The notes under the pieces are model-generated. The model was not told where the DNA came from, searched no databases, and saw nothing but the letters and a program-made list of their open reading frames with translations. Shown here in pieces: positions 5,264 to 29,493 of a stretch of 64,000 bases of DNA. The DNA comes from Lepidodermella squamata (lineage: Eukaryota > Animalia > Gastrotricha): the NCBI GenBank assembly GCA_047495785.1, contig JBLDXI010000009.1, positions 4,340,001 through 4,404,000 of the forward strand, written 5' to 3'. A program made the translations under genes and the position numbers. How positions within the stretch are numbered: the first letter of the stretch is position 1; each line of letters opens with the position of its first letter.

Positions 5264-7755
5264 ATGCTCTTACAGCTGTCACTTGTTTTTATCGCTGCAG
5301 CTGGGTCAAAGTCACGTGAGTTATTTTTCCAGGAACCATGAGATTACAAGAGTATGACTATAAACAGAGAATTGCGAACGCTTGAACAAAAATCCGATTT
5401 TGGGATCGGTTGGCTATTACAAGACTATGAATGGTGGGGTTATAGCGAGCACTCCCGATGACTTTAAAATGGGCGAGTTCGAAAATACCAGTTACCACTT
5501 CTACTGCAGCAACAATCGAACCGATTTTGAGCTGTATTCGTGTCGTAAGGGCAATTGGGAACGTGGTTGCTGTGGCGAGGGTAAGCCTGAGACGCTTCAT
5601 CATCGCATGTTATTAGGAGGCTTCCCTTTCTGAAAAATAATTTAGCTGAATGTATGCCTGTGCAATCGTGCGAAAGGAATAGCTGTTCACCCACAATGGC
5701 CCAAAGCACGAGCTCACGATGGTCCGGAAACTACTCATGCCCAACTCCATATGCTGTCATCAATCGCAATGAAATCGACTTGACTTTTACCGATGGTCAA
5801 GGGAAAGTGAAAACAGATATTTATTATATTAAGGAAGTTCTACCGTTGGAATCAGTGAGCTTTACTTGCAAGGTTACGGCGAAACAAGTTTTTTCGACTG
5901 TATGCCAACCAACTGGTTTCTACTCCCCTAACAAATTACCTTGTTGTTCCAATGGTATTAATTCAATCCCTATTCTTTAAAGACGTAAATGTGATGATCT
6001 CTTAACAGATGCTTGCAAAAATGAGGGCACCTGTGTAGACAACTTCTGTAAGTGCCCAGACGGGTATGGTGGCAATTTCTGCGAGAAAAGCACTCTGTCA
6101 GCAGTCACCCCTGACCCATCTTTACCGCCACCGGACCCTTCTCCTTACAGTGAGTGAATGACATATTCATTTTTAGGTATTGAAATTTCTGACCTTAACT
6201 AAAGGTTTGGTGGGCAAGATGAATGTTTCCAGAGTTTTTGCACAGATCACTTCGGCGGGATCCGGAGAAAGCATTGCTGTGATCAATGCTTCGAACAAGA
6301 CAATTTTCAAGGATCCACTGAGTAATGAATATAAAGCAGTTTTGGACGAATTTAGAGATACCATCAAGAGCATGTTTTCGATGGCTAGCATGCCAATGCC
6401 TACGAAGATTGAACTCGGGGCTAAGTTTGCTATTTAATCGTATTTCTTAAATCAAAACTTAATTCTATATTCCAGCGTTTCTGGGGACTATATTCAAGCA
6501 AAATTCAGTGCGGCTATGAATTTCGGATGGCTGGTGACAGCTGATGATGCTCGACGCATGCTAAGGCCTGCTATTGATTACCTTAATGTGACTGATAGCA
6601 GCGCCTTTGGCCTGGGTGGCTTGAGAACCTTCGAAGTCATTTCATACGGTAAAGACCGGGAAAATTCTCAACTACCCTCTACGGGTGGCTCACAAACTCC
6701 GTCCTTGAATAACTCCTCGAATCTCGCAAATAATGCTAACCAGCAGAATGTGTCCTCGGAAACGCCGAAGCCTAATTTTGGCATTTCTGCGAGGACCTCA
6801 TCTCAGCCTAAACCTGCTGAAGGATCCAGCTCATCGGCCCCTGCAAATGTCCCGAAATCTGACGCGGGCTCGGCTGTTACTGCAAGTCAATTGGCTTCCC
6901 AACCGAAGTCTGCAGATAACCCGAGCACAAATAAACCAATCAGCGCCCCTGCAGCGACAAACATGGACGCCGCAGCCACAGCCACAGCAAAGCAAGTAGC
7001 CCCGTCCTCAAATCCACCTCAAACAGCCAAATTCAGCAACAGTAAGCTATTGATAAAGCGTAGTCAAAGCAATACGCATAATATTATTTATCATAGAAAT
7101 AAAGGGGTCACTGCGGGTTAAGCGAGTCAACATCTCTCGATCGGCATTGACTGGTGGCAAAAAGTCGAAACGAGCTGCTGACACTGATTATGTGATCATT
7201 ACAGCAGACAATCAAACAATTTTCGCCAACAAAAGCAGTGTAGCCTACAACGCTGTTAAGGATGCTTTTATCGAGCAGCTTATTGCTCTGTACGCCGATA
7301 TGGGGCTACCCATGACAAAACAAGACTTGGAACTTGTTGACTTGAGGTAGGTTGAGATTGAAATCTAACACAACTCATAATTCCCAATGTCTTCCGTCAA
7401 CTTGTAAGTGGCCTTTACGGCGAGATTGCGGCAAACTATACGGCAACTGTTTCATCGGACGCTGCGTTGGATCAAGCAGATATCCAGCGTAGAGTGACCA
7501 AAGCAATTTCAGATTTGGAAACAATGGGCGCTTTCGACCTTTTCGCCTCTGACGATGTTACGACTGACATCCTGTCAATCTTTTCTACACCAGTGGACGC
7601 CCCCAGTGGATCTGGGACGAAAAAAAGCGCTGCAACTCGCGTGATCTTGGACGGTGAGTTTCAGTTCTTGTATAAAATCTACGGGTTTATATTGCTAACT
7701 AACAGGTATTTGGCTGGTCGCTTATGCCGTGACTCTACAAGCTGGGATGTATTAA
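5264..7755 (+). CDS. Array gene A: signal peptide, 2 sushi-like modules, EGF, SEA-like, Ser/Pro/Ala stalk, SEA-like, hydrophobic tail
   Basis: MLLQLSLVFIAAAG; C..GNW..CC and CQPTGFY.P..LPCC modules; EGF CKNEGTCVDNFCKCPDGYGGNFC; IFKDPLSNEYKAV and IFANKSSVAYNAV; KKSKR; ends GIWLVAYAVTLQAGMY*. Confidence 0.8.
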
Positions 7756-8036
7756 TTTTGAAAAAAAAATTTAACTTAGTTTTATGGCATTCAGTGTGTT
7801 TTTCTGCAATGGTCTCTTTGTTGAAGTAAACTAATTTCGGATTTCCTCGAATCAGTTCTGTTATTGCGAAAAAGATGAGTACACATAAAATGCATCATTT
7901 ACGAGTGAAATAGGCGTCGCGTTGCATTCAGCGTCACTCCATGAGCGTGAGACAGTGATCGTGTCGGGTTTATCCGCCAATCCTAATTTTTCCCCATTTT
8001 CACGCAATTGTGTTCCAGAGCGTTTCAAGATTCAGA

Positions 8037-9602
8037 ATGATAGTAAAAGGCAAGTTCCAGAAGAAGATGTTTGGCCTTATTGCTGTACTATTCTATGTCG
8101 CATCAATTTGGTCGAAGCCCTATTCGAAACGAAGCTCCGCCCATTACGTGTTGGATTATGTAAGAGCTTCAGTGATGGTCGATTCGCTAAATGAATATGT
8201 CTTACTAGAAATCAACTATGTCAGCCAGCTGCGAGAAATCTTCCGATTATCTCAGTTACAAAGCCCATTTGCCAGAGTGTAATCTGAACCTGGAAACTGA
8301 TCTCCTGGGTTCTGCCACTGGTAACCAAGTCCCGTCGAATATCACCGTAAAAAATGCGTGGCTAAACGCTGGGCTGGAATCGGACGGCTATTACGAGCCT
8401 CCTGATTGCCGGCCGAAGCATCGGATCGCGGTCTTGGTGCCGTATAAAAACCGGGAATCTGATTTACGAAAACTTCTCTACTACCAAATCCCCATATTGA
8501 AACGTCAGAAAGTCGCGTTTCAAATATTCCTAATCGAACCAGGTTCGCTGCGAAATTAGCTGTATTCGTGAAATTTGAATGATTTTTCAGAATTTTCGGA
8601 CCGAAGTAGGTTCTCTCGCGGCTTGTTACTGAATATTGGGCTATTGGAGGCGATGAGAGATGCTAAAGCTAAAGGTAGACCGCCGTGGTGCTGTGTAGCC
8701 AGCCATGACGTTGATAAGTAATGATTAAATTTCATTGGAATGCCAATTAAATTTGATTATTCAGAGTTATAGTAAACGACCACCTGTTATTCGTATGCCC
8801 TAATCCCGGCGAGATGTATCACATGGTACTGACGTAAGTTTCAAATATTTGAATTTCCTTTCAATTTCTTTCGATTTTTAGCCCGAATGATTTGCATTTC
8901 GGCGGTGTTGGCATAGTCAGGACTGATGATTACATGTGGATGAATGGTTACTCGAACACGTATTTCGGATGGGGAGGCGAGGATGATGAATTTGTCCGAA
9001 GGTATGGCATACTTTGATTAAGGTCCTACACATAATCCGGTCAATTTTTCAGAGGCTATTATCGTGGTTTTCGAATTGAACGGCCTGAAACTGCTCGATA
9101 CATGGTACACGAAGAAACAGGCGAGAGAGGGTACGACCCGAATCCTAGGTACGCTTTGTTAATTCCTTTATCGACTGAAAACTTGTACACCAACATAGGA
9201 TGTACGTCAACCGATTTTCATTCAAGCTCCGAATAGACTACGACGGAATTAATTGCTTAAAGTATCGTTTCATCAGCTTTACCGCTAACAAAACGTTCAC
9301 CCACATCCGAGTGTCATATTCCGAGGAGGAGGTCTTTGCGGTAAGAAACTAAATCTCAGCACTCAGACTTCTAAATTCTAATGCTTTCCTAGTATTACAT
9401 TTTTCATTGTTCGAAAGGCGGATATGGCCATCGAATAGCAGAATTGCAACTCCTTGATTACAACAGACTCAAGACGCGTTACCTCAAAGAGTGGAAGGCG
9501 AAATGGAGAAACGATCCGAAGCCTATTGGGACTGTAAATAGCCCTGAAGAATGCGACGATTTTGAATATCACAGACGCTTCAATTTGACTATACCGAGAT
9601 AG
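8037..9602 (+). CDS. GT7-family beta-1,4-galactosyl/GalNAc-transferase
   Basis: Type II anchor; RIAVLVPYKNR, FQIFLIEP, FSRGLLLNIG, HDVD (DxD), GYSNTYFGWGGEDDEF and DGINCLKY across short exons. Confidence 0.93.
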
Positions 9603-10094
9603 CTCTATCTGACTACTATGTTTTTTACTCTTCTTATAAAACAATCAGCGAGAATTGTCGGGGTAATATAAGCATTACGTAAATCTATTACTGAAAGATT
9701 TTTTACATAGCTAAATACATCAGTGATGAATCTTCCCAGAGCCTTGAAACAGGGCTTTCCTGGTTCCTGCATGCTGCACCAACCTGGGCCAGCAGCTCCA
9801 TGAATGCATTTAGAAAGCCCACCAAAATTAGCTACTGCAGCTTTGGCAGCGAATTAAACTGCTACATCAAATGAAAAGAATCTCTCATTCCACGAAATTA
9901 TCAATCCCAATTAAGAGACTAGGTCAATGTATTATGTCAATGTATTAGCTGTTTGCAGTACTACGAGCGCTAAAATAATGAACTTAACTAGCGACACAAA
10001 TGAGGTTATAGGTGACTGAGTATCTCGAAAATCGGACCAATCCTCTACTCATTAATCTGAATACAGTTTTAATCCCGGACAACACTCTCTGAAA

Positions 10095-11746
10095 ATGCGG
10101 CAATTCTTTTTGAAATATTGGAAATTCTGGCTATTATGCGCAGTCCTATTCTTAATTATTCTATTCAAAAGCACGGCCCGGCCTGACGAGATTAAAATCG
10201 AAAAGCCAACCGGGAACCGAAATTCTGGTGATACTCGAGCGAGAAACCCTGACTACCCAAAAGATCAGCAAGAAATTTTGAAAATCGTGGAAGTCGACTA
10301 CATTTCAACGCGGAGTGAGTGATAAACTCGGACTTAACACAAATTCCTTTAAACTTTACTCCTTACAGCTAACAAGAACCCGCTTAGGATTTGGTCGCTA
10401 GATTTGCACCATGCGACAAAGCTCGAATTTTTAACCGCACTTCAAAGCGTTTTACGTATCCCGACTGTTATGACTACAGCTTCTTTCAAAGACATAGAAA
10501 AAAGCATTGGAAATCAAGACTTTTTCCGAACGCTATGCCCTCATCCTCACGTACAACGACGTCTGTTTTTCGAACATCTCAAAGATAAGCCTGAAATTAC
10601 GAAAGCAGACATTCTGTGGAACGAAATGAAACCTGGAAATGTCGAGCTGTTATTTCCTTTTAACAAATCAATCATTTACTACGTCGCAACACCCCACGAA
10701 TTCGGTAGGGAGAATCCTATTCAGATCAAAGAGTGGTATGACAACTTGCAGCGGCTGTCAAAGGACCCTCGCTCTGCAATAATCGCGAATAACATATATG
10801 ATTTGCGGACATTGGAATACTTCACAGGTGTTAAAGCTGAGTACATACCCTCACTGAGTATGTACGCTAGAAACCAAGCTGTCTGGACAAAGCCAGACCG
10901 ATTTGACGTAGCTTTGGTCGGTGGAAATACCCAGGGCTGGTTCGCTAAGGAAATCATCAATAAAACCAATGAAATTCTCGAAAATATGAACGCGAAGATT
11001 CGACTGTCTTACATCAAGAAGATCTATCCAAGTTACCGATATCGTGATTTAACACGCCACTCTGCTATTGTTAACTTTCCTTACGCTCACTCAACTATGT
11101 CGCAATTCGAGTACTACAACATGGCTATTCCATCGTTTTACCCCAGCCTGGACTATATGCTACGACTGGAAGCTGAAGACTTTGCCAGGGGCTCGTTTCA
11201 AGGCTACCGCATTTACTGGAGGGGTCTACCCATTCGAAAAGGCGGTCCTTTCATAGACAAAAGCTGCAAGTTACCGGAGCCTTGTACGAATCCGCATGAT
11301 GTAAACGCGACGGATGATGAGCGGCGAGCTTGGTGGAAATTGGCTGATTTCTACCAGTGGAAGAACGTGGTTTATTTCGACTCGCCGCAAGACTTAGCTG
11401 AAAAGCTAGTTACGACAGACTTCGCTGAAGTTTCAGCTAGGTAAACAGCTTTTCTAAAAATTGTTTCAGACTTTTAACGAGTTTACTTTTAATTAGGATG
11501 AAAGACGAGCTTCGAAATATTCATGAAGAAGCGAAAGAGAAATGGTCGAAAGTGATAGGACGGATTCTCAATCCAATGCCCCAAGGTGGCTATAAAGTAG
11601 GATCCGATTATTATGAATCTATGCTGATAAGATGGGGCATTCGGAAGCGGGATCTGAACGAATCTGATGATGCAGAAGGACCGGCTTGTGATATGTATGC
11701 GAATGGTCCAGGTCGCGTTCAGCGAGCCGGACCAGCGTTTGTATAG
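10095..11746 (+). CDS. Type II membrane protein, putative glycosyltransferase-like enzyme, 3 exons
   Basis: Short N-tail plus TM (WKFWLLCAVLFLIILF), a stem and a large globular domain. SAIVNFPYAHSTMSQFEYYNMAIPSFYP resembles the E-x-x-x-x-x-x-P region of GT-B enzymes. Function is inferred. Confidence 0.6.
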
Positions 11747-12322
11747 ATGCAGCAATTCACGTGCTCGATTTTCCGATTACGAGGTCAAATAAGAAAGAAT
11801 AAAGACTATAGCATATTGTAATGTAACTGGTCTCTTCCATCTGATTGCATTTTGTTAGCTCAAATTTTCTCGCAGTTTCAACGAAGTTTGAATCATGAAG
11901 CGCTCAAAATGCGTCGTTAGTTGGTTCTAAGGACTCGGATGAACTTTCTGGAAACCCTAGGCATAAATTGAGTCTTGAGGCTGTCTGCTGTCTATTAATA
12001 ATAGAGGCATTCCTAGGCCTTTATCCTGTCAAATTATTGTCTAACAAATTTGCCGCGGATTTTAATTGGTTGTCCAATTAACAATATACTTGAAAGTGCA
12101 GGTATCTGAATACCAGCACATATGCTCGGTAAAAACTGCGACATTTTATTTGATATTCGGATAGGTAGCTAAGTTTTCCACGTCTTACGAACGTTATTTT
12201 TTTGTAGCTTTTCCTTCCAGCGCGCGATAACAAAATTCAGCCGCCTTGTAGCGAACTATTCTGCCATTTTTAAATTTCTCAAGAGCTTTTGAACAAGAGA
12301 AATCACTTCATAAAATATTCCT

Positions 12323-14994
12323 ATGCGGCAAGCGGCGAAAAAATGTTTGACTGCCGTGCTAATAGCCGAATCAATTTTCATCGGATGTGGTATGCTTTTC
12401 TTTTCCAGCTCAGAATGCTAAATGATAACCTTCCCATCCAAGTTGTTTCACTGGAAAGCGCTGACGTTCAGAGGGAGACGAGCAGCCTTGATCTTGGCGA
12501 CAGCGGCGTTACGATGTGCCCGGCGTTGCAAACGCTACCGGTCCAGGGCACGATAGGGTTTTACGTGTTGTTGAATGACCAAGTTATCAGCAACGGAACA
12601 GCCAAAGATCTCGGCGAGCCAAAATCAGTTGGCACAACTTTTCAAATGTATTGCAGCAACAGCCGTATGGACTCTCACGTTCAGCTCTGCGGCTCGGATG
12701 GTCAATGGAAGAGAAAACGGGCCTGGAATTTATTCGACAATAGGGGCAATAGTGGTAACAAGGAAAGCAACGGAAAAAAGGTGAATGCCGGAACTATCGC
12801 AGAAACCGTGAGTAACGGAATTATGGGGAGCAACAGCAACAGCGGCCCCAGCCTCAAAAGCAGAGCAAAATATGGCGATTCTGGAGATAGTGGAAATAGC
12901 GGCAACAGCGGCAACAATGGAAATGGGGACAGCAAGGAAAAGGAACGAGTATGTTGCGAGGGAGGTAAATTGCTCCGCTGAATCTCAATTTCACTATATT
13001 TCGTCACCGCTAGCTTTATGTGACAACGGCAAGCTGTGTAAGAATAATGAGTGCAGTGGAAATGCGCCGTCGCAAGCACCACAAAGACAGAGTCTTGCCG
13101 AGTTAAGCTGCCAGGCGCTCAAAGATAGCCAAAACCCGATTTTCACGTTAGTACCAGCAGTCGGTTCGCCCACAGTCAGCGATAAGGAGAACAGCCCAGG
13201 TTCAACCTTTACAACAACGTGCCTTAAAGTTGCAAAGCCACTGGGCCAAGTGACATGTCAGAAAAACGGCTTCTACTACCCAATTAAGGCTTATTGCTGC
13301 CAGCCATGTGAGTTTCGAAATATCTTAAGAATAGTTCAATTAACATCTGAACAATTTAGCTGACTGTCAAAATGGCGGGACGTGTGATAGTAAAACCAAT
13401 CTATGCGTCTGCGCCGGTGAATACAGGGGCGGCTATTGCGATAAGAAGAAAGGTAAAATACTAAGTTTTTCGAAATATATGCCCTCATCAAATGATCGCA
13501 ACAGGTGACAGGGGCTATGGCGATGATGGTAATTCGCAGTCGGACACCACAAATCGGCTAACAGGCGTGGTCACAACGGCAGAATCATCGGATTTGTCGA
13601 CAGTCGAGGCTGATGAGGAGCAGACAACGCAGATCACCGAAGAATCTACTAAATCGCCCGCAAAGCAAAGCGATTTGACAACAGTTAAACCAACAGCGAA
13701 GCTTGTTGAGCACGACTCTGTGACCGTTCCTCTTGAAACGCAAAAACCCCCAATCAGCGGAGGATTAGTAACGGCGAAAGGTTCTGAGGGCCAAGGAATA
13801 ACCCAGAAGAAAGCTGATGATAAGGTATCAACTGTGAAGCCTGGCGATATAACAACGGCTCCAGTTAACAAAGCGACGCAAAAGGCCGTTGAAACTAGTC
13901 AGGAGAAACCAGCTGGCCAGCAGCAAAGTAAAAGGCCTGACGAGTCTTGGGCTGGTGCGACTGATAAACCAGCTTCCAAAGCGGCTGAAGCAGGTGTCAC
14001 CGCGGCCTCAAAGGCGGCTGAAGTGAATTCTGCTGTTTCAAAAGCAGCTGAAACGAATTCTGCGGTTTCAAAGGCGGCTGAAGTTAAGCCTTTAAATGTA
14101 GGTGTCACAGCTCCTTCGAAAGCGGCTGAAGCAAATTCTGCAGTTTCAAAGTCCGCTGAAGCGAATCCTACAAATGCAGGTGTCACCTCGGCTTCAAAAG
14201 CGGCTGACGCTGCAGCTGCAACTGATGAAGCGCAACAGCCAAAATACCTGATAAGTAATTATCTCCGCCTTTGAAAACAGCATCACCACATTTCCTTTTC
14301 AGAGGTAAACGCCAGGCTGAGGGTTAAACAGGTCAAAATTCCCCGTTCGGTCTATGCTGGCAGCAAAATTGTGAGGCGAGCAACTGGAGACGAGCAGGTT
14401 TCAATCACCGGCAATGACACGGCTGTATTCGCTGATAAAGACAGCGAGGCTTACAAGGCGGTTAAAAAGGTTTTCATGGAACAACTGCTGAAAATGTATG
14501 CCGATATGGGGCTGCCTATGACTGAGCAAGATCTGGAAATTGTTGACTTGAGGTAAGTGGCTAGAAAGTGAGCATGATTGATTGCATTCTGCTTCTTTGA
14601 AGTGGTCTTTATGGGGAAATAACAGCGGACTATTCAGCTAGCGTAACATCAAACCAGCCGCTCGACAAAGCCGCTATTAATGAGAAAGTTGATAAGGCTA
14701 TCAAGAAATTGGATGATGCGGGAACATTCGACATTTTCGGCCCTGATGGGGTCACTGATTATGGCATAACTGACCTTATTGCAACGCCCATGGACTCAGT
14801 CAATGGAAACAATGCGGCTGCTGCTAGCAAGAACAATAAGAAAAGCTCAGCTACGCGAGTCGTTTCAACGGTGTTCCATGGTAAAATCATTTATTACTAG
14901 TTATTTGATAGCTCTTCAATTGTACTTCTTTGCAGCGGCTCTGCTGACTCTATCGTGGGCCTTGGTTAGCGCCCTGCTACAGCTGGACATATGA
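12323..14994 (+). CDS. Array gene D: 2 sushi-like modules, EGF, Thr/Ala stalk with SKAAE repeats, SEA-like, hydrophobic tail
   Basis: MRQAAKKCLTAVLIAESIFIGC; [28 protein letters not shown]; VFADKDSEAYKAV..MYADMGLPMTEQDLEIVDLR; ends ALLTLSWALVSALLQLDI*. Confidence 0.82.
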
Positions 14995-15700
14995 AACATA
15001 TTTCTGACAAAGATACGTACAATTTTTCGAGCGTTGAGTAGTTATTGGTGCAATTGGTTTCCTTCTCATTGTTGAAGTAAACTTCCTTCTGATTTCAAGT
15101 TACAGATGTTCCCATTTTATATCAAACTGAAAGTCTTCTGGGCTGAGATCTATTTTGCGCCGACGGATTGTTAATATGCTCTTTGCTCTAGCGAGATAAC
15201 GCAGAGGTTCAGGGAAAGGAATCGTGTATAGATTTCCAAGTAGGAACCACTGCAACAGCACGGCAATTTATGCGTTATTCCAGAATATTTCCACCGTGAT
15301 CCAGTTCAGATTTTTCAGAGCAGTTTCATACGATTGAATAAGCTTTTTTCCTGAAGAGGTCGAAAGGAATGCATGAAAATGCATGCTACGCTGTTCACAA
15401 TCCACAGGTTCGAATCCTTATTTTCCATTCCTAATTTTTTCTCGTTCCAGGTCTGCAAGTCTTTTACGTAAGCAGAGTTGCAGCAAAATTAATTATTGAT
15501 TTATGGGTCTAAATATTTTTCACACATTGCTTTCGCTGCAGCTGCTTTATTGCTTGATTTATTAGATTAAACACTGAAAATAGAAGCGAACAAATAAAAC
15601 TTGCGGAAATTTGAAACGAATTCTGGTGACGTTGCGCGTGTTTCAAATAAAACCTTTGAATCAAAAGCCATACATCTATCCTTTCGTCCTCCTTTTCCAG

Positions 15701-17842
15701 ATGTTTCGCTTCAAGATGTTGAAGGTATCCGCGTTTCTCGCTGCAGCAAGTTGCCTGGGTAAGTTCAGTAAGAGAAAAATATTGTATTTTAAAACCAGTC
15801 ATGTGAACAGCTTATGCGGCCAACCAAACTTCGATCAACACGACAACTCCTAAACCACTGTATTCGAACGTTGGGAATGCAACATCGAAAATACTCAGCC
15901 CTTCTAACACGACTGCCAACTCGACGATGACAACTGGTGCATTGGCTATTTCAAATACTACGTCACCACGAGCGCTCACCAGCGCAACCACCAGAAGCGT
16001 AGTGACAACCCCTGCGAAAGCAATCTACACAACGGCTAATTATTTCCAGGATACAACTCCAGCCACTCAGCGAACGACACCTCGTCCCACCGCGAATTCA
16101 ATGGGGACAAAATCTGCTGGAAGCATTGGAACTTCTGGGCTGAATACTGACATTCTCACAACACCGGGCAAAGCTGGGATCTCGGGCTTGACTTCACCAC
16201 GAGCTCCCAACCCTACAACAAATGGAAACATGATGACAACTCCTGCGAAAGCCATCTATAATACGGCTAATTCTTTCGACGGAACGACAGTACGGACGAC
16301 CCCTCGACCCACTGCGAATTCGATGGGAACAAAATATGCTGGTAATTCTGGGATGAATACTGACATTCTCACGACACCAGGAAAAGGTGGGATCTTGGGT
16401 TTCACCTCACCACCCAACACAGCATCGATCGGTAAAATAATGACCACTGATCTGAAAGCCAATTCTGCTGCGGCTAATGCCGTCGACGATCGTACGGTTG
16501 GAACGACCCCGAAAGCCACTGCTCGACCTGCCACGGGGCTAACAACAAAGCTGCCTGGTACTACTGGGCTGAATTCTGCTATTTCGACATCGACCATCGC
16601 TCGGCTTATGACGACTGCAAAAGGTGGGGAATTCATGGGAACAACCACTCGAAAAACGGCAAGAACGAGCTCAGTGACCGACAGCTCGGACATTGAAACA
16701 ACCGAAGTGACAACTACGGAAGACGACTTAGCAGCAGAGATCACTACCCCTCAAAAACAAGGCTCGCAAACTACGACTCGACGCGGCATTGTAACGACTG
16801 CGCCCGCTGACAACAACAAAGTGGTTACTACAATTCGTGGGGGCAAAGAACGAGAAACGATTACTTCGAACCCTCCTGGTATCGTAACCTCAGCCCCCTC
16901 AAGCTTGATTAGATCTAGCTTGCGGAATGACGCTGCCTCCTCAGTTCAAAATTCGGTTACTACAGCAAAGATGATTGGAAGAGTCTCCCAAACTGACCCA
17001 GCTAGTGGTACCTCGCTATCGCAGGGGGGAAATTCAGGATCTACTCCGCCGAACACGGTTAGTACTGCAACAGCTAAGAACACATCAACTCCAGCGAAAA
17101 AGTACATCAACCGTAAGTTGAAAGCTAATAATCGATGAATAGAGGTTTGAACTGGTTTCCAATACAGGACTCGGGGGTATTCTGATGTCTAAGAAATGCT
17201 TCATACCGAGGTCAACGCTGAAGATCAATCGTAAGCGGGACGCGGATATGATCGCTGTGAATGCAAGCGACCCAGCTTTGCTCGACCGAAACAGTGCTGT
17301 CTATAAAGCGGTCTCAGACGCTTTCACTGCTCAGCTGCTTAAAATTATGCAACAGGTCGATCCAACTTCAACATCGAAAAGTATTGAGAACCTTGCGATA
17401 CAAATCGAGTAAGCCATGATAAAGGTATCGAATTATTTAGCAATATTTTCTACCGTAGTCCCATGGTCGATCTTCTGATTGCAAACTATACGGCGGCTTT
17501 GCGAACTGATCTCACTGATCCTTCTGAAAAGGTCTCATCCGTGATTCAAACTCTCCAAAGTTCTGGAGCATTCAATGACGTGTTTGGTAGCAGCCCACTC
17601 ACCTCTGCCATTTACAGCGTCGAATCGAAAGAGAATGACATGGTTAGCAGCGTTTCGTCGGTAGGCACTGGATCAATCAACATAAAATGGAATTCAGCGG
17701 TCAGCAACATGCAGGGTAAGTAACAACTATTGATTAAGTTCAGAATTATTTTTCGATGTTGACTATGAAATTTCCAGCTTGCGTAGCGACAATAATTCTC
17801 GCAGCTGCCGCTTCGTTCTTCGTTCTTATTCCAGAAAACTGA
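15701..17842 (+). CDS. Array gene E: long Thr-rich mucin with one SEA-like domain and a hydrophobic tail
   Basis: MLKVSAFLAAASCL; >400-aa Thr-rich exon; NRKRDAD; LLDRNSAVYKAV; ends ACVATIILAAAASFFVLIPEN*. Confidence 0.82.
16005..16410 (+). repeat. Internal coding duplication in gene E
   Basis: Two copies of TTPAKAIY.TAN.F...RTTPRPTANSMGTK.AG..G.NTDILTTPGK.GI.G.TSP, followed by a degenerate third. Confidence 0.85.
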
Positions 17843-18320
17843 TGACGATGAAATTAAACGTCGAATATCCAGATGTGACCAGTGAACACAAAATGTATAT
17901 ATTTATCTTCATTTTCCCATTTTCTTTCTGTTAAATATAATTTTATTCATTTCAAATTTCGTCTTTTCATCAATGAGAAAATAAACTTCTTCGGTGTCGT
18001 GCAGCACTAAAGGTGTGGAAGATGCCTCGCTTATCACTTATCATCTTCAAGCAATATTTTTAATGTCCATTTAGATTGCAGATATTCATCTTATAAAGTT
18101 CTACCACGTGTAATTCTCACAAAAATACATCTCGTTTGTTAACATTTAAGGTCCAAGCCGGAAAATTCAACATAGCAGTGTTTACAAAGTTGGTTGAAGC
18201 GAATAATAATTGGGGAATGGAAGAAATAACACATTGTTTGCCTAATTAAATATAAGATTTTCGAAAGTTAAGCCATGGCGAAACCACTCACATTTCTTTC
18301 GGCAGCATTTCCACAACATA

Positions 18321-20065
18321 ATGCCTTATTTCAAGGTAATTATTTTTTTGATCCATTTGGTGGCGGTGTTAGGTAACAACCTTTGACATTACCTTAGCAG
18401 GAATTTTTAGAAATGTCTTCCTAGCCGATGAATCTTCCGGCCAAAAACCTTGCCAACCTCTGAAGGAAAGTCCCCTGAAAGGCTCTATCGGCTACTTCAA
18501 GTTCATAGGGTATGTAGCGGTGCCGATCAATGAACATTCCGATATTTTAGAGGGTCAAATTCACGAAACCACATACGCTTACTACTGCAGTCAGAATGTG
18601 ACTGATTACGAGGTGATATCTTGCAAAAATGGAATCTGGAAATATGGTAAACGTACATGCTGCGAGGGAGGTAGGCATTGTATAAATTATCCATAGTTCT
18701 TGGAAGAATCAACTCTGCTTTCATTAGCTACATGTGGTCCAGGTTTATTATGCTTGAATAATGAGTGTCAAAAATCAACTGTCCCACCGCCTATCGAAAT
18801 TAGCAAAAAGTTGACGCCATGGAACTGTTATCCCTTGAAGTACTTGGACTCACTAGAGCAGTTCAACTTCTACTGGAATGACTCGTCAATGATTACGCGT
18901 TTAGATTCGCAGCGACCACCTTATGAGAAATTTAACATGACGTGCAGGAACAACCAGTCTGCATCGTGGGGAGTTCAGTGCCATCCCTCGAGCTACTATA
19001 ACCCAAGGCCCCCAGTTTGCTGCAATTCTTGTAATATATTTCCCTTTATGCTTTTCCATCTTAAAAACACCTCTCATTCCCATAGCGGTTTGCCAGAATA
19101 ACGGCACTTGTTTAAATGGCGTCTGCCAATGTCCGCCAGGATACAATGGAGCCTTCTGTGAAAAGGCGCATAGTATGTTCACAACTGTAATTTTCACAGA
19201 AACTGACGGATACATTTTCTGAATGAAAGATGCCACGAGGAACCCCTTGCCTGAATCAACATCATCGTCGAAAATTCCTGGAAACGTAAAAGAGCTAACA
19301 ACTATATCTGCGACCAGCACGACACAGATTCTACCTTTGAAAGCTTTTAAATCACGTTAGTCTCCTACTGATCGATATTGTCCAGCTTAATAAGAAGTCT
19401 TACAGGTATCAGTGGCAAGCTAGCCACAAAGCAAATCAAAATACGACAAACCTCGGCTAGTAGTGGCAAACGGAGAAGAAATGCTGATCTGACAGCGGTT
19501 GACGCGAGCAACCCCGGCCTCGCCGATAAGAACAGCGACATTTACAAGGCTGTTAAGGATACTTTCAACGACCAGCTGATTGGAATTTTCAAGAAAATGG
19601 GCATCACTGTGACGGCGAAGGATCTTGAAAGCATGGAAATTGAGTATTTTTAGGGATTTAAGTTTCATCAACTTGTTATAAGATTGCTTTCTAGTGCATC
19701 TCTTGGAGAGATTGCCGCAACTTACACCGCGGTAGTGACGACTGACAAGGAGACCACTCTGGAAGATATTAAGCGGTCGGTTTCTTCAGCTGTAGATTCG
19801 CTGGAGAAGGAGGGCTTTTTCGCCGATGCATTCGGATCAAATGGGTTGCAGTCCGACATTCTGTCTCTCAAAGTTATTAATGAAGGGGGTAACACAGCTG
19901 GTACGGGGTCTGTAGCCGTATCCAGTGATGGGAAGGTGAAAAAGAATACCGCAGAAACCAATTCTCATAGTAAGCAAGATTACTGCCATTTCGAGGTAAT
20001 AATATTTTCATTATCTAGAAACTTGGCTTGTTGCGATAGCGGCATTTTATGTTATGGCAGCCTAA
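18321..20065 (+). CDS. Array gene F: 2 sushi-like modules, EGF, SEA-like, hydrophobic tail
   Basis: MPYFKVIIFLIHLVAVL; GIWKYGKRTCCEG; EGF CQNNGTCLNGVCQCPPGYNGAFC; GKRRRNAD; ends TWLVAIAAFYVMAA*. Confidence 0.82.
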
Positions 20066-20690
20066 TAATTAGTGGGACGACTCTTCGGCAAATCATGGAC
20101 TTTCTCACGCTTATTCATCACCCTTTACCTATTTTGATTCATTCAAATTCACTATCACGAAACAAAAAAATAAAAAGGGTTTCCGTTTGCTCGGTGCCTA
20201 CTCATGACACAATGGATTCGTTGCCTTACAAGTCCATGTTTTGAGAGTCGAGGTGGAACATGGAGGTGTTTTCACCCTGAGATAATGCTCGTGCCATCCG
20301 GAACTAACGAAATATGTGATGTTCGGTATTCTTGCTACAGCAATTTTTCTTTGCGTTAAAACTAGCTTGGGTCTAGTCCTTAGATCTGGGCCGTTCAGAT
20401 AAATCAAACGTGCCTTTTTGAATGTTCTTCGCTTCAAATTCGATCATCTAAAGGCTGCTTTAATCAATGTTGGAAAGTTTTTTCGCTCGAAAACAAGCCG
20501 CTCTCAACGTGCAAAATATTTGACAAGTTTCACCATCCCGGATATTATATTGCAATGACGCAAAGAGGACCAGCTCGAAATAGCTCCATGAAAGAATTAA
20601 TAATTTTTATCAGCTTTATTCCAAATTCGCGATCCTCCTCGACACTCGCTCGAATACATTCGCGAGGAGAGCTGGAACTCTGAGGTTAAA

Positions 20691-22406
20691 ATGAAAACAA
20701 TTTCTACTTTTTTTATACACCTTTGGATGCTAGGCACTCTAAGTTAGCTTAAGTTTTATAATATGGCAATATTTCAATTATTTGGTATAGTGTGCTGGGC
20801 GCAAGTCGCTAAGCCGTCGAACATGGCCCCCGAAACATCTATGCAGGCTCGAGATGACAACAGCGTTGGCGAAGGCTCTTCAGCCATAACCGGAGGCTTT
20901 GTCGTCAAACAAGTCCTGATTACCAAGTCCCTGGGAGCGACCTCTGACCTCACTGTGACATCCAAGGATACAGGAATCTTTGCAGATAAAACTAGCATGA
21001 CTTACACGATTTTGACCTGGGTTTTCGCTGATCGAATTCAGACGACGTATCTTGCTCTGGGCTTGAACGTGACTCAAAAAGACATCATAATCTCGAATAT
21101 ATCGTATGTTTAAACAAAATTTAAGTTGAAGTAAAGTAGCAATATTGTTTTCCAGGTCATCCCGCAATTTTGTCGTTGCAAATCACTCTATCATGATCAG
21201 AAGTCAACCCCCACCAGTTGATGCTGTCAGACAATTCGTTCTCCAGCAAACAAAGAAAATGGAAAACCAAGGTTTCTATGACAGGTTCTTTGGTAAGGAT
21301 GGGTTCGTAGGCCTAGATATACTCGCGATCGATGCTGTGAACGAGGTTGTTCCGCCGCCTGAAAATTCGCCAGTTGAAGACAACGGCTTTGGAGGAGACA
21401 CGAGTTATGCCACCCACCAACCAGCGATCCGTTCTTCGCCGAAATCCCAGAACTGGGAGACAAATCCAAGTCAAACTGAGAAGCCTGCTGCTGTTGCGAA
21501 TCAGGTCGTAACAGACAAACAGCCTGCAGTCAAAGCAACAAACGCACCCCAAGTTACCTCTAAGTTCAAGTCCCGTTAGGTCAAAAACAGTCATAGTTTA
21601 CTTTTTTACACAAGTCGCTTTTTTGAAGGTGTGGTTGGTAAAATGACTGTGAAGCAAGTTATAATTTCCAAACCGGCCTCAACTAGTAGACGCAAGAGGC
21701 AGACGGCATCTTTGAGTGCAACTGATGTTGCTGCATTGGATAAGAATAGCGAAACTTACAAAGCCGTGAAACAGGTTATCATCGAACAACTGATAGCTAC
21801 CTACCAGCAGCTGGGCGTCCCAATGACAGCTCAAGATCTCGACAACGTCGAAATCACGTTAGATTTCATGTTTGATCTGTTTAACTTAACTCTATGGAAC
21901 CTTTCTCATTGCACAGAACAGCAGTCGATAGGATCATTGCTGATTACGCAGCCATTATCAAGACGGACAATCAACTGAGTCTCGATCAGATAAAACAATT
22001 GGTTTCCATTACCATAAAGCAGCTCCAGAATAAGGATTTCTACAAGTCAGCTTTTGGAACTGATGGAGTCACAGCGTTTGATATCATGGATGTAACCAAT
22101 GGAGGCGCAATGGTTGAAAGATCACCTGAATCAACGCCACAGAGAAACTCTGGCGAGCTGAGCAAAGGTTCGACTACTTCAGGACCTGAAAATCATGTTG
22201 GTGATATGAATAAAAGTTCGACTGCTTCAGCGGTTGAGAATACCTCTGGCGAGGTGAGTAAAGGATCAACTGGTTCAATACCCAAGAAGAACTCTGTGGC
22301 AACTATCAAAGGTTAGCCTATAAGAAATACTGAGCTTCACTAACAAGTAATTTTCTTTGCAGCTGGATGGATTACGATTGCTGCCATTATTTTGTTATCA
22401 GCTTAA
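20691..22406 (+). CDS. Array gene G: two SEA-like domains, no Cys modules
   Basis: MKTISTFFIHLWMLGTL; IFADKTSMTY and LDKNSETYKAV; SRRKRQ; ends GWITIAAIILLSA*. Confidence 0.8.
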
Positions 22407-22984
22407 CTACATTTAAACAGAGAAACATTCTCATGTTATACTTAGGAAGCATAGACATAGGAACGAAAACAGCACTTGGAATTAAACTTTCATAATTTTA
22501 GGCAGTTTGCTTCATATTTTCCGGCTATTGTAAATAAATTTCCTCGCATGCGTATCTCTCGCTTTCAAAATTCCTAGGCGGCGTTCCAAAGTTTTTATGG
22601 GTTATCGAAAAATCGTTAATATTTCTTAGCGCAGCCGAACCTGACTACAGTGAAGATGATTTCAACTCTCTTATTTTATCAGGGTGAAAATTTCAATCAT
22701 CAAACTTTTTTACGAGACTTCAAGCTTAGTATTCCCGCATTCATCTGCTGAATTAAAAACGAAGCTATAAGCATGAAAAAGGATGGGTTGCGTTGTGACA
22801 GGCTTTTTCTGGTAAATTGTCTGTAAACAACGTAATAGACAAAATGTAATTGGGAAGTTGTATCAATGCGCAATTTACACCTCTGAATTCACAAAATCAC
22901 TGTTTCCCTCTCATTAATTGTAGACGCGAAAACTAGTCTAAAATTCTTTTTCATTTAACAGCAGATTCACAGCTTGCTTTGGTT

Positions 22985-23277
22985 ATGTTCAGCTTCTTGC
23001 TTCAATTTGCGGCAATCTTTTTGAGCATATTAGGTACGCTCAGTGCTGATTTTGGTTTATTCCGCTTGAAGAATTATTTCCTCAGCCTCTAGATCCTTTG
23101 GTCAATCAAGCTTTCCCCTCGGTGGGTTTCAACTCAAAGAATCGATTGCCCAAAGCCTGTTTTCAGCAGGCCAATCATTGCCAATCGAACAATACATCAA
23201 CTATTTTTTCGGGTAAAAACTACTTATGGGCATTGTCAATTAAACATCTGACGAATCATTCCTTTTACAGCTGGTAG
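22985..23277 (+). CDS. Small secreted peptide (~60 aa, 3 exons), absent from the ORF track
   Basis: MFSFLLQFAAIFLSIL|ASRSFGQSSFPLGGFQLKESIAQSLFSAGQSLPIEQYINYFFG|W*, joined by two GT-AG introns of locally typical size. Confidence 0.6.
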
Positions 23278-23770
23278 ATGAATCCAGCATGCTTGAAGCT
23301 TGAATTCTGTATGAAGACTTTTTCCGGATCAGACCATGCATCATGTGCACTTTCTCTGATAAGTAACTGTGTTAAAGGCGATCTGTTCAGGTTTTCTAAA
23401 ATCGACTCCAATAGAAATCGATCCGCACTATTGTTGAAGTAGCTGTTATTGCTTGGAAAGATTTCAATTATATCTTGTGAAACTGTCGTTATTATTTGCC
23501 GGAATATAAAAGAAGTCAAAGTGACCCTTCGATGAAGAAAAGTAATTAAAACTTGTGTTTTTTTCCAGAACTTCGCTCTTTTTTTTTTCCTTGCAGCAGC
23601 AAACGCTGTTTTCAGCTTATTTTAATTGCCAAATAAGGGTGGGCGGAGCATAGTTTTCAAGTTGATAATTGCAAGTATGCCAAAATTTCACTCGAGTTTA
23701 CCTTCAATTAGAGAATTCTGAGAAAGGCCCCGACGTGCTGCAGATTTTCATCCGATTAAAACTGGAAAAA

Positions 23771-26700
23771 ATGGTGTTTAACCGTGTTATGCTGGTGCCA
23801 CTTGTCCTAGCCTTGTGGAAAGGTTTCCGAAATAACAAGCCACATTACACATCACATTACAGTCTCCTTATTTTACAGTTGATCTCACCGCAGCACAGAC
23901 ATGTGCACCTCTGGGTCGCGACATCATCAAAGGCTCGATCGGGTATTACAAGCTTTTTGACGGAGAACTACTGCCCAGGGAGGAGACAGATTTCTCGAAA
24001 AATCAATCAGTCTACACAAGGTTCAACATCTACTGCTACAACAAACGTGACGGGTACTTGGCTATTACATGCAGAGATGATAGGAATTGGCAGCGGTGGG
24101 ACTCGCGTGTTTGCTGTGAAGGCGGTTAGTCGATTCAATCTCTCTTTGATTCTCGATAAAGCTTGTATTAATAGCGCACTGTGGAATGGGCCTATTCTGC
24201 CTTAATAACACTTGTCAGGTACCACCGAAGCCGATGACCATTCGGAATATAACCCTGACCGAACTGACATGTCCGCCGTTGAACAGCTTGGATAGCTATG
24301 GGCAGTTCAGTTATTCCATGATTTCAGCTGGAGAAATCACCTTGGACACGGAACGCAATACGTCTGAAAGGTTCGTCGCGACATGCAAGGACACATACGG
24401 ATACAATAAGCGTTGGATGATCACCTGCCAAGCGAATGGCAACTACTACCCAGCGTTACCAGTGTGTTGCAACTCGGGTGAGAGATGACCTAGTTTCTCT
24501 ATTATTTCAATTCTTGCTCATATGCTTCAAGCTGCTTGCCAAAATGGTGGGACCTGCGACGTGAATGGGAAATGCGTATGCCCAAGGGGTTTCTCAGGCG
24601 GCAGGTGCGAAAACGTTCCGCGTAGGTTTTATCGCAGCCAATGACTGTTATAATTATTACCAAATTGTATGAAAGCCCCTACGATCCAACAAGTGACTAC
24701 TACGCTTCAGACAACTACTGCTAATGTTGCTTACTACCGTAAGCGATTTCTTCTTCCTATGAGTTGTGCAGAACGTATTTGGTTTTAGGATTGAATGGCC
24801 GATTGAGCGTGCGCCAAGTTTTGGTTTCGGAAAAAGATCTGACCGGAAACGGTTCTGATACTGCATCGATATCGATAACCACTGAAAACAGAACAGATAT
24901 AACAAACGCGACCAGCCGTATTTACAAGCCTGTTATCAGCAAATTAGCCGGTAGAATTATGGACACCTACTCTGTGATCACTGGCCAGTTGATTAGTTGG
25001 CCTCAACTGATATGGATTGTGGTCAAGTTTGTATTTTCTCGAAAATAACCGATTCTTTTAACGAAGCATTTCAGCGTAACTGATGATGGAATAACAGGTC
25101 ATTATTCAGTGAAGATACGAGCTCCTGACAATATGGCTCCTGAACTTGTCCTAAAGAAGTATGCGCCCTTGATTGAAATGTACGTGGGCATGACTAGATT
25201 CGAGAAGTATTTCGGGCCCAATGGGGAAAACCGCTTCGAACTTGTGTCGTGCTCATTACTACCACTAGATCCTACAACAGCTCCGAGTAAGGTCTTTACC
25301 ACAGCAGCTCGTATGGCTAGCTTAGCAACCACTCTGGCTGGCCAGCAATATGCCTCTATAAATTACCGTAAGTCAAGAAGAGACTTTCAGTTTGGCTGCA
25401 AATGTTGTCTTCTCAGGGTTGCAAGGGGGATTCGATTTGCAGCAGGTTAAGATCAGACAGAATGTGAAAGCTGTTAATGCCTCGATCGCAACGATTACCG
25501 CGAAAAATACGTCGGTTTTTGATGATAAATCCAGCTCAGAATACTCAACAGTCCTCAACGCATGCCGCGAACGTATTCTTTCTACTTTCAAGCAGATTCT
25601 ACCCCCAATGGTCAAGGTGATACATGAATTAACTCTTGCAGGGTAATCAACTCAAAAACGCACTCCGGATTGCCATTATCCAGTTTTCAATTGCAGGTAT
25701 TATGGTGACATTGTTCAGGCGAATTTTTCGGTTCGATTGGAGAGTTATTCTTCGCCTGCAAACGTCACCATGCATGAATTCCAAGACTGGATTAAAAGCT
25801 CAGTCCGAGAACTCGTGAAGAAGGGTTATTATGACGATGTTTTTGGAGTTGACGGCATTATTCACTTCAGCGTCGCTGCCCGAGCAATTATATCAGATGC
25901 AGCCGAGACAACTCTTCTGCCGACTACTCCAGCAATTTCAACTACGACTTTGAAAACAACAACTGAGCAAAAGGCTACAGAGCCGATAGTAACTACTACG
26001 AAAGAAGCGATTGAAGCGCAAACTACCGAGGCAAGTATGCCAACCAAGGCTAAAAAAGACATTGAAACGCCGAGTACAGCAGCCATTAAGACAACTACTC
26101 CTCCTAAAGCGACATCCCAACCTACTAGCCAAGTCCCAAGCTCTACGGTCCCCTCAACTCAAATTCCCAAGTTTAAAAATCGTAAGATGAAAGCTGATCA
26201 AATTTCCAAACCTAAAAGATTTCTGTGATGAAGGTGTTAGTGGAAAACTCTCCGCTAAGAAAGTCATGATTCGCAAATCAGCTGTTAACGGCAGACGGAA
26301 GAGAGGAACTGATGAAATGGTGGCTATCAGCGCCAGTGATCCAGCGCTTCTGGATAAGAACAGCGAAATTTACAAGGCAGTGAAAGATACATTCAACAGC
26401 CAGCTGATAGAAATTTTCAGCAAAATGGGTGCCACTGTCACGCCTCAAGATCTTGAAACCATGGAAATCAAGTAATTCTTTACAATTTCTCGTTTCATTG
26501 TATAATTTCTTTCGATTCAGCGCTTCTCTTGGTGAAATCGCAGCATCATACACAGCTGTGGTGAACACAGACAAGGAGGCTTCTATCGATGATATAAAAC
26601 AGTCCGTGTCCTCGGCAGTCCAGGAACTTGAGAAGTCAGGATTCTTCACGAGTGCATTTGGAAGTGATGGGATCAAGTCAGACATACTATCCTTGAATGT

Positions 26701-26824
26701 GGTAACCGGAGGACAAACTCCGCCTAAAGCGGTCGCCCAAAAATCAGCTGCCAACCTTTGCGAATTGAAGATTTGGTCGTTAATTACCGCAGCCTTGATC
26801 AGCCTCCTATGCACTATTTATTAG
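23771..26824 (+). CDS. Array gene H: 2 sushi-like modules, EGF, three SEA-like domains, Thr stalk, hydrophobic tail
   Basis: [16 protein letters not shown]; [15 protein letters not shown]; [27 protein letters not shown]; [19 protein letters not shown] and LLDKNSEIY; GRRKRG; ends [17 protein letters not shown]. Confidence 0.82.
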
Positions 26825-27485
26825 GATCAGAGAAAGACATTTGGAAAATGTGAAAGCAATCTTTTGAACTCCGAATCAGCTTATTAACCATAACTACAAT
26901 CTTTGTTAGAAAAACTTTAAATAGCTTCTGATTTTACTAATCTATCAACTATGGAAATAGATGGATGGATTGCAAAATGTGTTCATAAGTCTCGAATTTC
27001 CTTTCTTGTGCTTTTTTCCTCCTATAAAATAAATTATGAAAACGGTGGATCTTGGACCTCATGTACCAGATTGGTCCTCAATTTCGGAACATTCCGACAG
27101 GTTACGTCAAAGAATATCTCCTTAATATTCGCGTATAACAGAGTTTTCCGAAGGCTCCAGGCTGTCCCTTCAGCAACTCGAGCGATAATGGCTTGATGCT
27201 TGATTCTCCCTCGGTAATCGGACGTATATTGTCTTTCGAAGTCATGATGTTACAGAACACCTATGCTGCGATTAAAAATTATCTGTTACAGAATATAATA
27301 CCCATATTTGCATAGCTTTTCACTCCTCATGCAAGTCCCGATACGTTTCAAGTGCATTTTCTTAAGCAAACACGCGTTTGTCTGCCGTATATAATGCGCC
27401 TCCAATCGTTTCCGCGTTTTCAATTAAAACACAGGGGAAATCTCGACGAGTGCAATCGAACAAGATTCATCGACAAAATACCAGC

Positions 27486-29493
27486 ATGATATCTTTACTC
27501 CCTCTGTCGTGCCATATGGACTGTCTGGCTCTGACCATTGGACTAACGTTACTTTACTGTAGTAAGTGATTCCGCGGGATATATCACCATATAAGGATAC
27601 ACAATTATTCATTAGATTCAAATGCTCAAAATCCAACATGCCCTCCGCCTCGTCTTCCAATCGGGGGTTTCTTCTACGGCTATGAAGGTAGGAAATCGGT
27701 AAAATACACGAATCAGAGCTCCTTGGAGCGGCGAACGAATCGAGTCACTGACTTCTACGCAGTTTACTGCCCAAAATTCAGCGAAATCACCGCAATACAA
27801 TTCGCTATTATCTGTGACACAACCGGGCAATGGAACCCGCCGCCGTTAGCCTGCTGCCCTCGAGGTCTGCCATTGTTTCCTTTCTATACCTTGAAACATC
27901 TCTATTTCTTAAACAGAAAGCTGTTTGAATGACGGGCAGTGTACTCAGATCGAACCATTCCGATGTGAATGTCCTCGAGGTTTCTCCGGTGATCTCTGCC
28001 AGAATAGAGAGGGAGGTGAGGCACCCAAACCATTGAAACCCATCTTACATAAATTAGTCTTCCATAGATCCTACGGGTCTTTGCTCGCCCCTAGGTCAGG
28101 CTCCACAGGGAGCGGTCGGCGTTTACAAAGTCTTAAATAGACAAATGGTTAATGTAAATCAAACCGAGCTTTCGTCGCCCCAACCCTTCGGCACGAGTTA
28201 TACAATATACTGCGAAGACAGATATGAGCCAGTTCTTACCTTCCACTGCCGGAGAAGTGAGACAGGGCAAGGTCCCTTACAATGGAGACCAGACCCCACG
28301 AATGCATGCATAGCGGATGGAAAAACTACGAAAACAACTAGCACAACGATTCGGCCGGAAGATGAAGAGACTTCTTCGGATGATTTTGAAACCACGGAGA
28401 CTACGATAGAAGAAACTGAAGCAACTACAATCACTGATGCCGAAGAGCAAACAACACAAGCTGAAGAGCCAGTTGTAACTGTAAATTCGACAGCCATTAC
28501 GCTAGAATCGACTCGGATGATTCCACCGATAACGTCATCTCAAACGGTTAAAACTAACGACTCGGTAGCAACCACGAAAAGGGCCTCTTCAACTGTAATG
28601 ACGAACACTAAACCTTTATCAACTACCAAGCCATCTGCCATAACTACATCATCAGGGGTCGAAAGGAACTTTTACAGTAAGATTTCCAATTTTCAAGTTT
28701 TGCTTAACAACAAGGCTTCCCATCTTTCAGAATTCACTCTTACTTTCAGAGTGAAACGAGTCAGGGTCGCCAGCCAAACTATTGACGAGTTAGGGCAGCT
28801 GATCAGGCGACAAGCAGATGGGTTGATTGAAGTGAACGCAACAAATTGGTCGAAGCTATCGCAGAACAAAACCATCTACAAATCAGTGCAGTCAGTTTTT
28901 GAAGAACATGTCCTGGTTATATTCGAAAATGCTGGTCTGCAAGATCCGATCACATTGAATACGACTGGTCTAGGGTACGTTTTCTTTAACCTAATTTTCG
29001 AGACGCTTTCGTTTCGACCTACTGTCCCGAGGATTTCAGGTGTTTTTGAGTATTACGTGGGAGATTGGCACTGTATTTTAACAATTACACTTCAGAAAAA
29101 CCAAATGTTTTAAACACGCTAGCCCACGCCATATAGTTTTCGACCCTGGCAACACGGACTTGAACGCTATGTCTTTTTTACAGCTCAGAAAATGGCAGTA
29201 TCGTCTACAACTGCACTGTTGTGGCTAAGTACAATGCGAAAATAGACCTTAATTTCGCGCGAAGTGCCCTAAATCAGGGCGTCAAGTTCACAGCTGAAAC
29301 TCGAAGCTTCGAAGCCGCCTTCGGAAATTTGACCGACTTCACCTACGCAATTATCGATCTTTCGATAGTTAAGGAGCCGGAAAAGCCGCTGCCAATTACT
29401 CGTTCAAATACAGGAAGCTTACCTTACTCGTCGATACTGGCAACATCCTTCGGACTAATTATTTTTCGTATCTTCCTGGAAGCTTATTCTTGA
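27486..29493 (+). CDS. Array gene I (most divergent): sushi-like, EGF, sushi-like, Thr/Glu stalk, SEA-like, hydrophobic tail
   Basis: Signal-like LALTIGLTLLYC; CPPP...CDTTGQWNPPPLAC; EGF CLNDGQC..CECPRGFSGDLC; IRRQAD; SENGSIVYNC; ends ILATSFGLIIFRIFLEAYS*. Confidence 0.78.

Follow-up and report, generated by a model that had tools for sequence, protein, structure and literature searches.

Tandem gastrotrich genes for probable surface glycoproteins combine divergent SEA-type domains with a putative convertase site next to the membrane

Introduction

In animal surface mucins, and in several receptors, SEA domains serve as the standard breakable link. They adopt an alpha/beta sandwich fold, ferredoxin-like and about 110 residues long, with the order beta1-alpha1-beta2-beta3-alpha2-beta4, and their autoproteolysis takes place at a G-S[VI]VV motif in the beta2-beta3 turn, where the Ser serves as the nucleophile. 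In the gastrotrich Lepidodermella squamata, a window of 64,000 nucleotides (the whole stretch of DNA analysed here; contig JBLDXI010000009.1, positions 4,340,001 to 4,404,000) holds at positions 5264-29493 seven genes on the plus strand, which carry 11 copies of one two-exon domain of ~130 residues. The locus raises the question of what this domain is, and of how the proteins built from it are held at the cell surface or released from it.

We regard it as probable that the genes encode seven paralogous surface glycoproteins, which combine a divergent, non-self-cleaving SEA domain with a convertase-type site in its membrane-proximal copy and with a glycosylphosphatidylinositol (GPI)-type tail. 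The predicted order of parts is a signal peptide, zero to two Cys modules (one type of which is sushi-like), zero or one EGF domain, one or more Ser/Thr-rich stalks, one to three divergent SEA domains and a GPI-type signal. These building blocks are all familiar; the interest of the locus lies in the loss of self-cleavage, the position-specific site in a novel loop, the extreme divergence and the exon-shuffling architecture. An earlier reading of the bare sequence (the original prediction) had proposed modular surface proteins with SEA-like domains, and the lost G-S pair and the confinement of the basic site to the membrane-proximal copies go beyond it.

Eleven copies of one domain

Hidden Markov models built from the local copies and run on the stop-to-stop translation recovered exactly 11 N-half and 11 C-half exons, all on the plus strand, and detected no further domain halves in the 64-kb window. 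Genes 1 to 7 carry 2, 1, 1, 1, 2, 3 and 1 copies, respectively. Both halves can be aligned over all 11 copies, and the paralogues, which are 20-56% identical, keep the fold-defining pattern. Trees of the domain halves do not resolve, and the distal copies sit on very long branches. The shared strand and the copy numbers are those of the tandem array originally predicted, with the difference that a B4GalT-like gene and an open reading frame of 346 residues break the array between genes 1 and 2 (Table 1).

A very divergent SEA domain

Canonical SEA domains are present elsewhere in the same genome. A six-frame scan of the 121.2-Mb assembly (151 contigs, GC ~42%), which is also the scope of the other genome-wide profile scans, with the Pfam SEA model (PF01390, gathering score 26.4 bits) revealed at least 22 loci above the cut-off outside the window and none within it. 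These canonical domains are intronless and keep the sequence FRKG-S-I-I-A-D-Y-I-V; in contrast, the window copies are split by an intron, have mostly lost the G-S pair and, exon by exon, remain below the cut-off.

Distant relatives are few. A profile of the N-halves, compared with 1.84 billion representative proteins, produced two matches termed P0001 and P0002, to which P0003 (77% identical) adds the sole further relative. All three stem from ENA metagenome assemblies, on contigs of 14-37 kb. P0001 is an N-half exon of 74 residues with RSRR at the position of the basic site discussed below. P0002 is an uninterrupted domain of 154 residues with a Ser/Asn stretch and a hydrophobic C-terminus, and both P0002 and P0003 lack introns and finish with a GPI-like tail. 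P0002 matches the two window-only half-profiles collinearly (30.7 and 24.9 bits). Since the second of these, the C-half profile, played no part in finding it, P0002 is taken as a true homologue. Nothing was found in a word-index search of proteins with a C-half exon nor, with P0002 as the query, in a search of metagenome contigs for related loci.

The sequence evidence for an SEA identity comes from profile-profile comparison with a reference made of 13 SEA domains that Pfam detects in the same genome. A whole-domain profile, composed of the intronless relative P0002, the C-half rows of the window and N-half rows of the two contig-25 genes described below only, matched this reference with a hhalign probability of 96.4% (E 1.4e-9) over 89 collinear columns. 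The window C-halves alone reached 93.4% (E 2.5e-7), with GEIAA.Y placed on GSIIADY, and the N-halves alone gave an E value of 1.4e-3 in the expected register of beta1 and helix 1. Negative controls against Sushi domains scored 0.05%. In a feature search of the ESM Atlas with P0002, the top three clusters were SEA (0.93-0.91), as were 15 of the 30 matches, and a search with one window N-half yielded weak leads only. Near both queries lies an unnamed Atlas cluster of 120 proteins of 146 residues, which may belong to the same family as the metagenome relatives. Two other leads were discarded: half-profiles compared with PDB sequences gave chance matches only (gamma-glutamyltranspeptidase, and phycobilisome linker repeats via an "F-G-x-D" motif), and an internal duplication of the two halves, prompted by their stacking in MAFFT, was rejected at a hhalign probability of 0.4%.

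The fold was approached through P0002. Its AlphaFold2 model, for which the rows of the whole-domain profile served as the alignment, has a core predicted local distance difference test (pLDDT) of ~80 and consists of a short strand, a helix (residues 18-37), two strands (42-53 and 58-67), a second helix (75-90) and a last strand (104-111). The relative, which is not a window protein, thus shows the beta-alpha-beta-beta-alpha-beta order of the SEA/ferredoxin-like fold that had been anticipated. No Foldseek match reached the E-value line of 0.001; the SEA entry 2e7v came at rank 8 by E value (0.13), but with the top probability of 0.97. A structural search of 48,161 chains ranked first residues 96-210 of TMPRSS6 (Z 8.9, 104 residues aligned), which we take to be the SEA domain of this protein, matriptase-2. 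MUC16 SEA domains followed at ranks 2-4 (Z 7.5, 7.0 and 6.8) and 2e7v at rank 6 (Z 6.2); over these five SEA matches, 92-104 residues were aligned. Lower matches include the membrane-adjacent domain of protocadherin-15 and a Gpr126 ectodomain entry with a SEA domain in it. The Z values are individually middling, yet they concentrate on one family across the whole domain, which argues that the fold of P0002 is SEA.

Since profile-profile homology, the fold of the modelled relative and the SEA neighbours in the ESM Atlas agree, the assignment of the window domain as a very divergent SEA domain, as predicted from sequence and from a model, is supported. An identity first suggested from the helix pattern alone is thereby borne out, and the Pfam SEA model misses members such as these.

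Lost self-cleavage and a basic site next to the membrane

The G-S pair is replaced in ten of the 11 copies, by G-E (four copies), G-D (two copies), D-R, N-F, D-L or D-G, and is kept in the copy of gene 7 alone. Because the nucleophilic Ser is lost to this extent, the SEA copies of the family are predicted to be unable to cleave themselves.

All copies share a conserved N-terminal extension (G..G.L.VKQV.I), which is followed by a loop of 10-15 residues ahead of beta1. This loop holds a multibasic site in all seven membrane-proximal copies (RRKR twice, KRRR, RKR, KSKR, VRR and IRR) and in none of the four distal ones, a split that has a probability of 1/330 by exact count. The site occupies a fixed position ahead of a conserved small or acidic stretch, and it is here that P0001 carries its RSRR. 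A model of the N-half alone comprises a strand (residues 11-15), a loop of lower pLDDT with the basic site, a further strand (30-34) and a helix (46-66). As the extension is conserved in 11 of 11 copies, including those without a basic site, the extra strand is argued to be part of the fold. About ten loci with a proprotein-convertase P-domain are found in the genome. Judged from its sequence, the basic site is a putative cutting site of the furin/proprotein-convertase type.

In the mechanism that we propose, a convertase would cut the presumably exposed loop between the extra N-terminal strand (VKQV.I) and beta1 in the secretory pathway and would leave the stalked head as a chain separate from a lipid-anchored SEA stub. 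The head might then either stay bound via the extra strand until a pull removes it, or be released outright as a soluble mucin-like product; a surface coat or recognition would be plausible roles. A more specific proposal is that the extra strand and the convertase loop constitute an independently evolved "tethered-strand" release device of the membrane-proximal repeat only, the distal repeats being uncut spacers. We consider this proposal tentative and rather doubtful. If it were true, a single beta-strand would keep the head on the SEA stub and mechanical pull or ligand binding would shed it, a functional analogue of SEA/GAIN autoproteolysis that employs a different cut in a different loop.

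Several points weigh against the assignment of cleavable SEA domains. Compared directly with the Pfam SEA model, the separate window exons, P0002 and P0001 gave no match at E <= 1-10; the relation to SEA that the original prediction had drawn emerges from the profile-profile match to Pfam-positive domains instead. Z values of 7-9 fall in a range that the search tool calls common, and the evidence for the fold comes from the relative P0002, every window domain being split by an intron so that none was modelled whole. The pairing of the extra strand with beta1 in the N-half model may be an artefact of the missing half. Finally, of the seven sites, three deviate from a strict R-x-K/R-R, being no more than dibasic (VRR, IRR) or of the form K-x-K-R.

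These deviant sites, and the fact that many SEA domains are never cleaved, would suit an alternative in which the domain is a genuine SEA domain, the basic site is a conserved surface patch (e.g., one that binds, near the membrane, glycosaminoglycans or lipids) and the proteins remain single-chain. We judge this alternative unlikely: the motif is fixed in position beside a conserved small/acidic stretch, absent from all four distal copies, represented by RSRR in the distant relative P0001 and situated in a low-confidence loop of the N-half model. Moreover, there is a precedent for furin-cut SEA domains in Notch2 and human GPR126, where furin cuts the beta2-beta3 loop, the same loop that contains the autoproteolytic site, and the chains then remain associated and part only under force (PMC6954182).

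The C-terminal anchor

As predicted, all seven genes end in a hydrophobic stretch, which is 14-21 residues long and has no residues beyond it. In genes 1-5 this tail is encoded on a separate last exon and preceded by a conserved small-residue motif of the type KK-S/N-x-A-T. By hydropathy and inspection, the window genes match what is expected of GPI-anchored proteins, namely an N-terminal signal peptide, a small omega-region, a short spacer, 12-20 hydrophobic residues and no cytoplasmic residues.

Genome-wide scans with the half-profiles detected the 11 window copies, two genes on contig 25 and weak matches to canonical SEA loci only. The contig-25 genes are near-identical paralogues on the minus strand (G000:C25:762000-768000, L001; G000:C25:771500-777500, L002). 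They code for mucins with the closest paralogue of the window SEA variant, share its intron position and are devoid of the basic loop. Their C-termini comprise a true transmembrane segment and a basic cytoplasmic tail that begins CCRR/CCRH, and in comparison with these the tail-less ends of the window genes look more like GPI signals.

Based on these sequence features, the window proteins are probably GPI-anchored. Genes 1 and 7 have tails of only moderate hydrophobicity, as might be expected if the C-terminal stretch were a tail-less transmembrane anchor or the proteins were simply secreted. Such an arrangement is improbable, given that all tails are protein-terminal, 14-21 residues long, free of charged stop-transfer residues and preceded by the small-residue region, and that the related contig-25 genes provide this family's example of a real transmembrane segment with a cytoplasmic tail.

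Head modules and stalks

EGF domains (Pfam models PF00008/PF07974) occur in five of the seven genes, one in each, above the cut-off in genes 1, 4 and 6 and just below it, at 21.3 bits, in genes 2 and 7, in keeping with the zero or one EGF per gene that had been noted.

The Cys modules, originally described as sushi-like, fall into two types, for one of which the description is appropriate. The hallmark of Sushi/CCP domains is a set of four Cys and a conserved Trp. Module B of gene 6 matches Pfam Sushi (PF00084, cut-off 20.7 bits) with 22.4 bits, and a module B profile, compared with 12 canonical sushi domains of the genome, gives a match of 73.8% (E 2.9e-5) that is confined to the C-terminal half; a Tyr takes the place of the conserved Trp. 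Module A has no Pfam match and shows no similarity to sushi (hhalign probability 1.3%), despite its four Cys and Trp.

Sushi domains as such are massively expanded genome-wide. The candidates number 1,734; of these, 150 were scored and every one exceeds the Pfam cut-off, many of them in dense tandem runs on contigs 15, 19, 33, 13, 3 and 24.

The variable Ser/Thr stalks of the original prediction are present, although at 20-35% Ser+Thr they are only moderately rich in these residues. The stalks would be candidates for O-glycosylation.

Introns and exon shuffling

Every domain copy is split at one shared place, the end of strand beta2, by a GT-AG intron of phase 2 in at least ten of the 11 copies, which extends the earlier observation of a common intron position. 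The intron is 49-62 nucleotides (nt) long in nine copies and ~173 nt long in gene 7 (the eleventh copy is that at 24785). Profile scans of the genome detected no uninterrupted copy of the domain; three of the introns are in frame, each with a stop.

The signal peptide has an exon of its own in all seven genes, followed by a phase-1 intron of ~52 nt. The upstream chain was traced in genes 1, 4 and 6 as signal peptide, Cys module A, Cys module B, EGF and SEA, and all module boundaries in these genes are phase-1 introns of 48-65 nt, except for one of 122 nt in gene 6. Phase-1 introns around modules are the classical signature of exon shuffling. Since such introns bound the modules here, the domain shuffling that had been proposed finds support. 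In the reading favoured here, exon shuffling built and diversified the genes, together with duplication in tandem.

The reading frame is open throughout the 22 domain exons and in every signal-peptide and tail exon. These open exons, the canonical GT-AG introns in conserved phases and the fold-defining pattern still kept by paralogues of 20-56% identity make it very unlikely, in spite of the very long branches of the distal copies, that some or even all seven genes are decaying pseudogenes, without current function, of a family that expanded recently.

Comparison with known systems

The window domains resemble the SEA domains of MUC1, MUC16, TMPRSS6/matriptase-2 and enteropeptidase (PF01390) in the order of the fold, and TMPRSS6 and MUC16 provide the best structural matches. 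Genuine SEA domains can be aligned with the window domains in the helix-1 pattern D..S..Y..V...F..QL and in the strand-3 pattern G.I.A.Y. As in membrane mucins, the domain is juxtamembrane and lies below a stalk, which here is presumed to be O-glycosylated, and the tandem repeats recall those of MUC16. Unlike the SEA domains of mucins and proteases, the window copies score under the Pfam threshold, have lost the G-S[VI]VV pair in 10 of 11 cases and possess an extra conserved N-terminal strand and loop. Their anchor is of the GPI type rather than a transmembrane segment with a cytoplasmic tail, and their head consists of sushi-like and EGF modules.

With the Notch heterodimerisation domain (S1 site) and the SEA domain of GPR126/ADGRG6, the family would share a convertase site in place of autoproteolysis and an expected product of two chains, non-covalently joined until force pulls them apart, provided that cleavage occurs. 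In contrast to Notch2 and GPR126, the beta2-beta3 turn of the window domains holds an intron and no basic site; the putative cut lies upstream of beta1, after the added strand, and at most one strand would tether the head. The principle of a convertase-cut SEA domain is therefore already known, and the position of the site is new.

The family would represent a lineage that dropped the self-cutting chemistry and gained a protease site at a new position, only next to the membrane. Repeats with and without the site in one protein, together with self-cleaving SEA families in the same genome, form a natural comparison set for the effect of cleavage position on shedding. The locus also contributes a surface-protein family to a phylum for which hardly any annotated proteins exist.

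The near absence of relatives fits the original prediction of a lineage-specific family. However, the case for lineage specificity is weaker than it appears, as gastrotrichs are barely sampled and the genome was probably published without gene annotation. The term "introns" is absent from the text of the genome paper (PMC11660948), which we read as a sign that no gene annotation was published. If so, the near absence from protein databases would in part be due to this.

Layout of the locus

The coordinates of the gene parts are compiled in Table 1.

Table 1. Parts of the seven genes and the interrupting genes in the window (SEA-type copies are given as N-half and C-half exons)
Element	Gene span (strand)	N-half exon	C-half exon	Basic site	Other parts and remarks
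Gene 1, head	5264..7756 (+)				Signal peptide exon 5264-5315; Cys module A 5368-5580; sushi-like module B 5646-5954; EGF 6009-6149
Gene 1, SEA copy 1		6201-6425	6474-6650	none	Followed by stalk 6651-7095
Gene 1, SEA copy 2		7096-7347	7407-7589	KSKR	Hydrophobic tail exon 7706-7756
Interrupting non-family genes, between genes 1 and 2	8209..11750 (+)				B4GalT-like (Glyco_transf_7N exon 8209-8556); single-exon open reading frame of 346 residues 10404-11444
Gene 2, head	12323..14994 (+)				Signal peptide 12323-12389; Cys module A to 12978, with Gly/Ser/Asn insertion
Gene 2, middle					Sushi-like module B 12995-13300; EGF 13344-13505; stalk 13492-14298 with 78-nt tandem repeats
Gene 2, SEA copy		14299-14553	14601-14789	VRR	Tail exon 14936-14994
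Gene 3	15701..17843 (+)				Signal peptide exon to 15758; long Thr-rich stalk 15811-17163; no Cys module or EGF
Gene 3, SEA copy		17164-17409	17457-17630	RKR	Intron 17716-17777, then tail exon
Gene 4, head	18321..20066 (+)				Signal peptide 18321-18372; Cys module A 18425-18679; sushi-like module B 18728-19030; EGF 19086-19200
Gene 4, SEA copy		19402-19650	19693-19887	KRRR	Intron 19970-20018, then tail exon
Gene 5, SEA copy 1	20763..22407 (+)	20880-21110	21154-21348	none	Signal peptide in first exon (20763-); copy followed by stalk
Gene 5, SEA copy 2		21625-21864	21915-22106	RRKR	Then stalk, intron 22312-22362 and tail exon; gene without Cys module
Gene 6, head	23771..26824 (+)				Signal peptide 23771-23822; Cys module A 23879-24124; sushi-like module B 24175-24477; EGF 24532-24621
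Gene 6, SEA copy 1		24785-24997	25094-25270	none
Gene 6, SEA copy 2		25413-25643	25695-25901	none	Followed by stalk
Gene 6, SEA copy 3		26230-26472	26519-26713	RRKR	Hydrophobic tail in the same exon
Gene 7, head	27486..29493 (+)				Signal peptide 27486-27561; Cys module 27616-27890; EGF 27913-28020; Cys module 28076-28330
Gene 7, SEA copy		28736-29010	29184-29400	IRR	Most divergent copy, only one with G-S pair kept; acidic Thr-rich stalk 28361-28735; tail to 29493

Both interrupting genes lie on the strand of the array. The open reading frame of 346 residues is intact and has no Pfam match at E <= 1. The B4GalT-like gene scores 66.6 bits with Glyco_transf_7N, a domain that is found at no fewer than 23 loci, i.e., at least 23, genome-wide, including a tandem group on contig 29.

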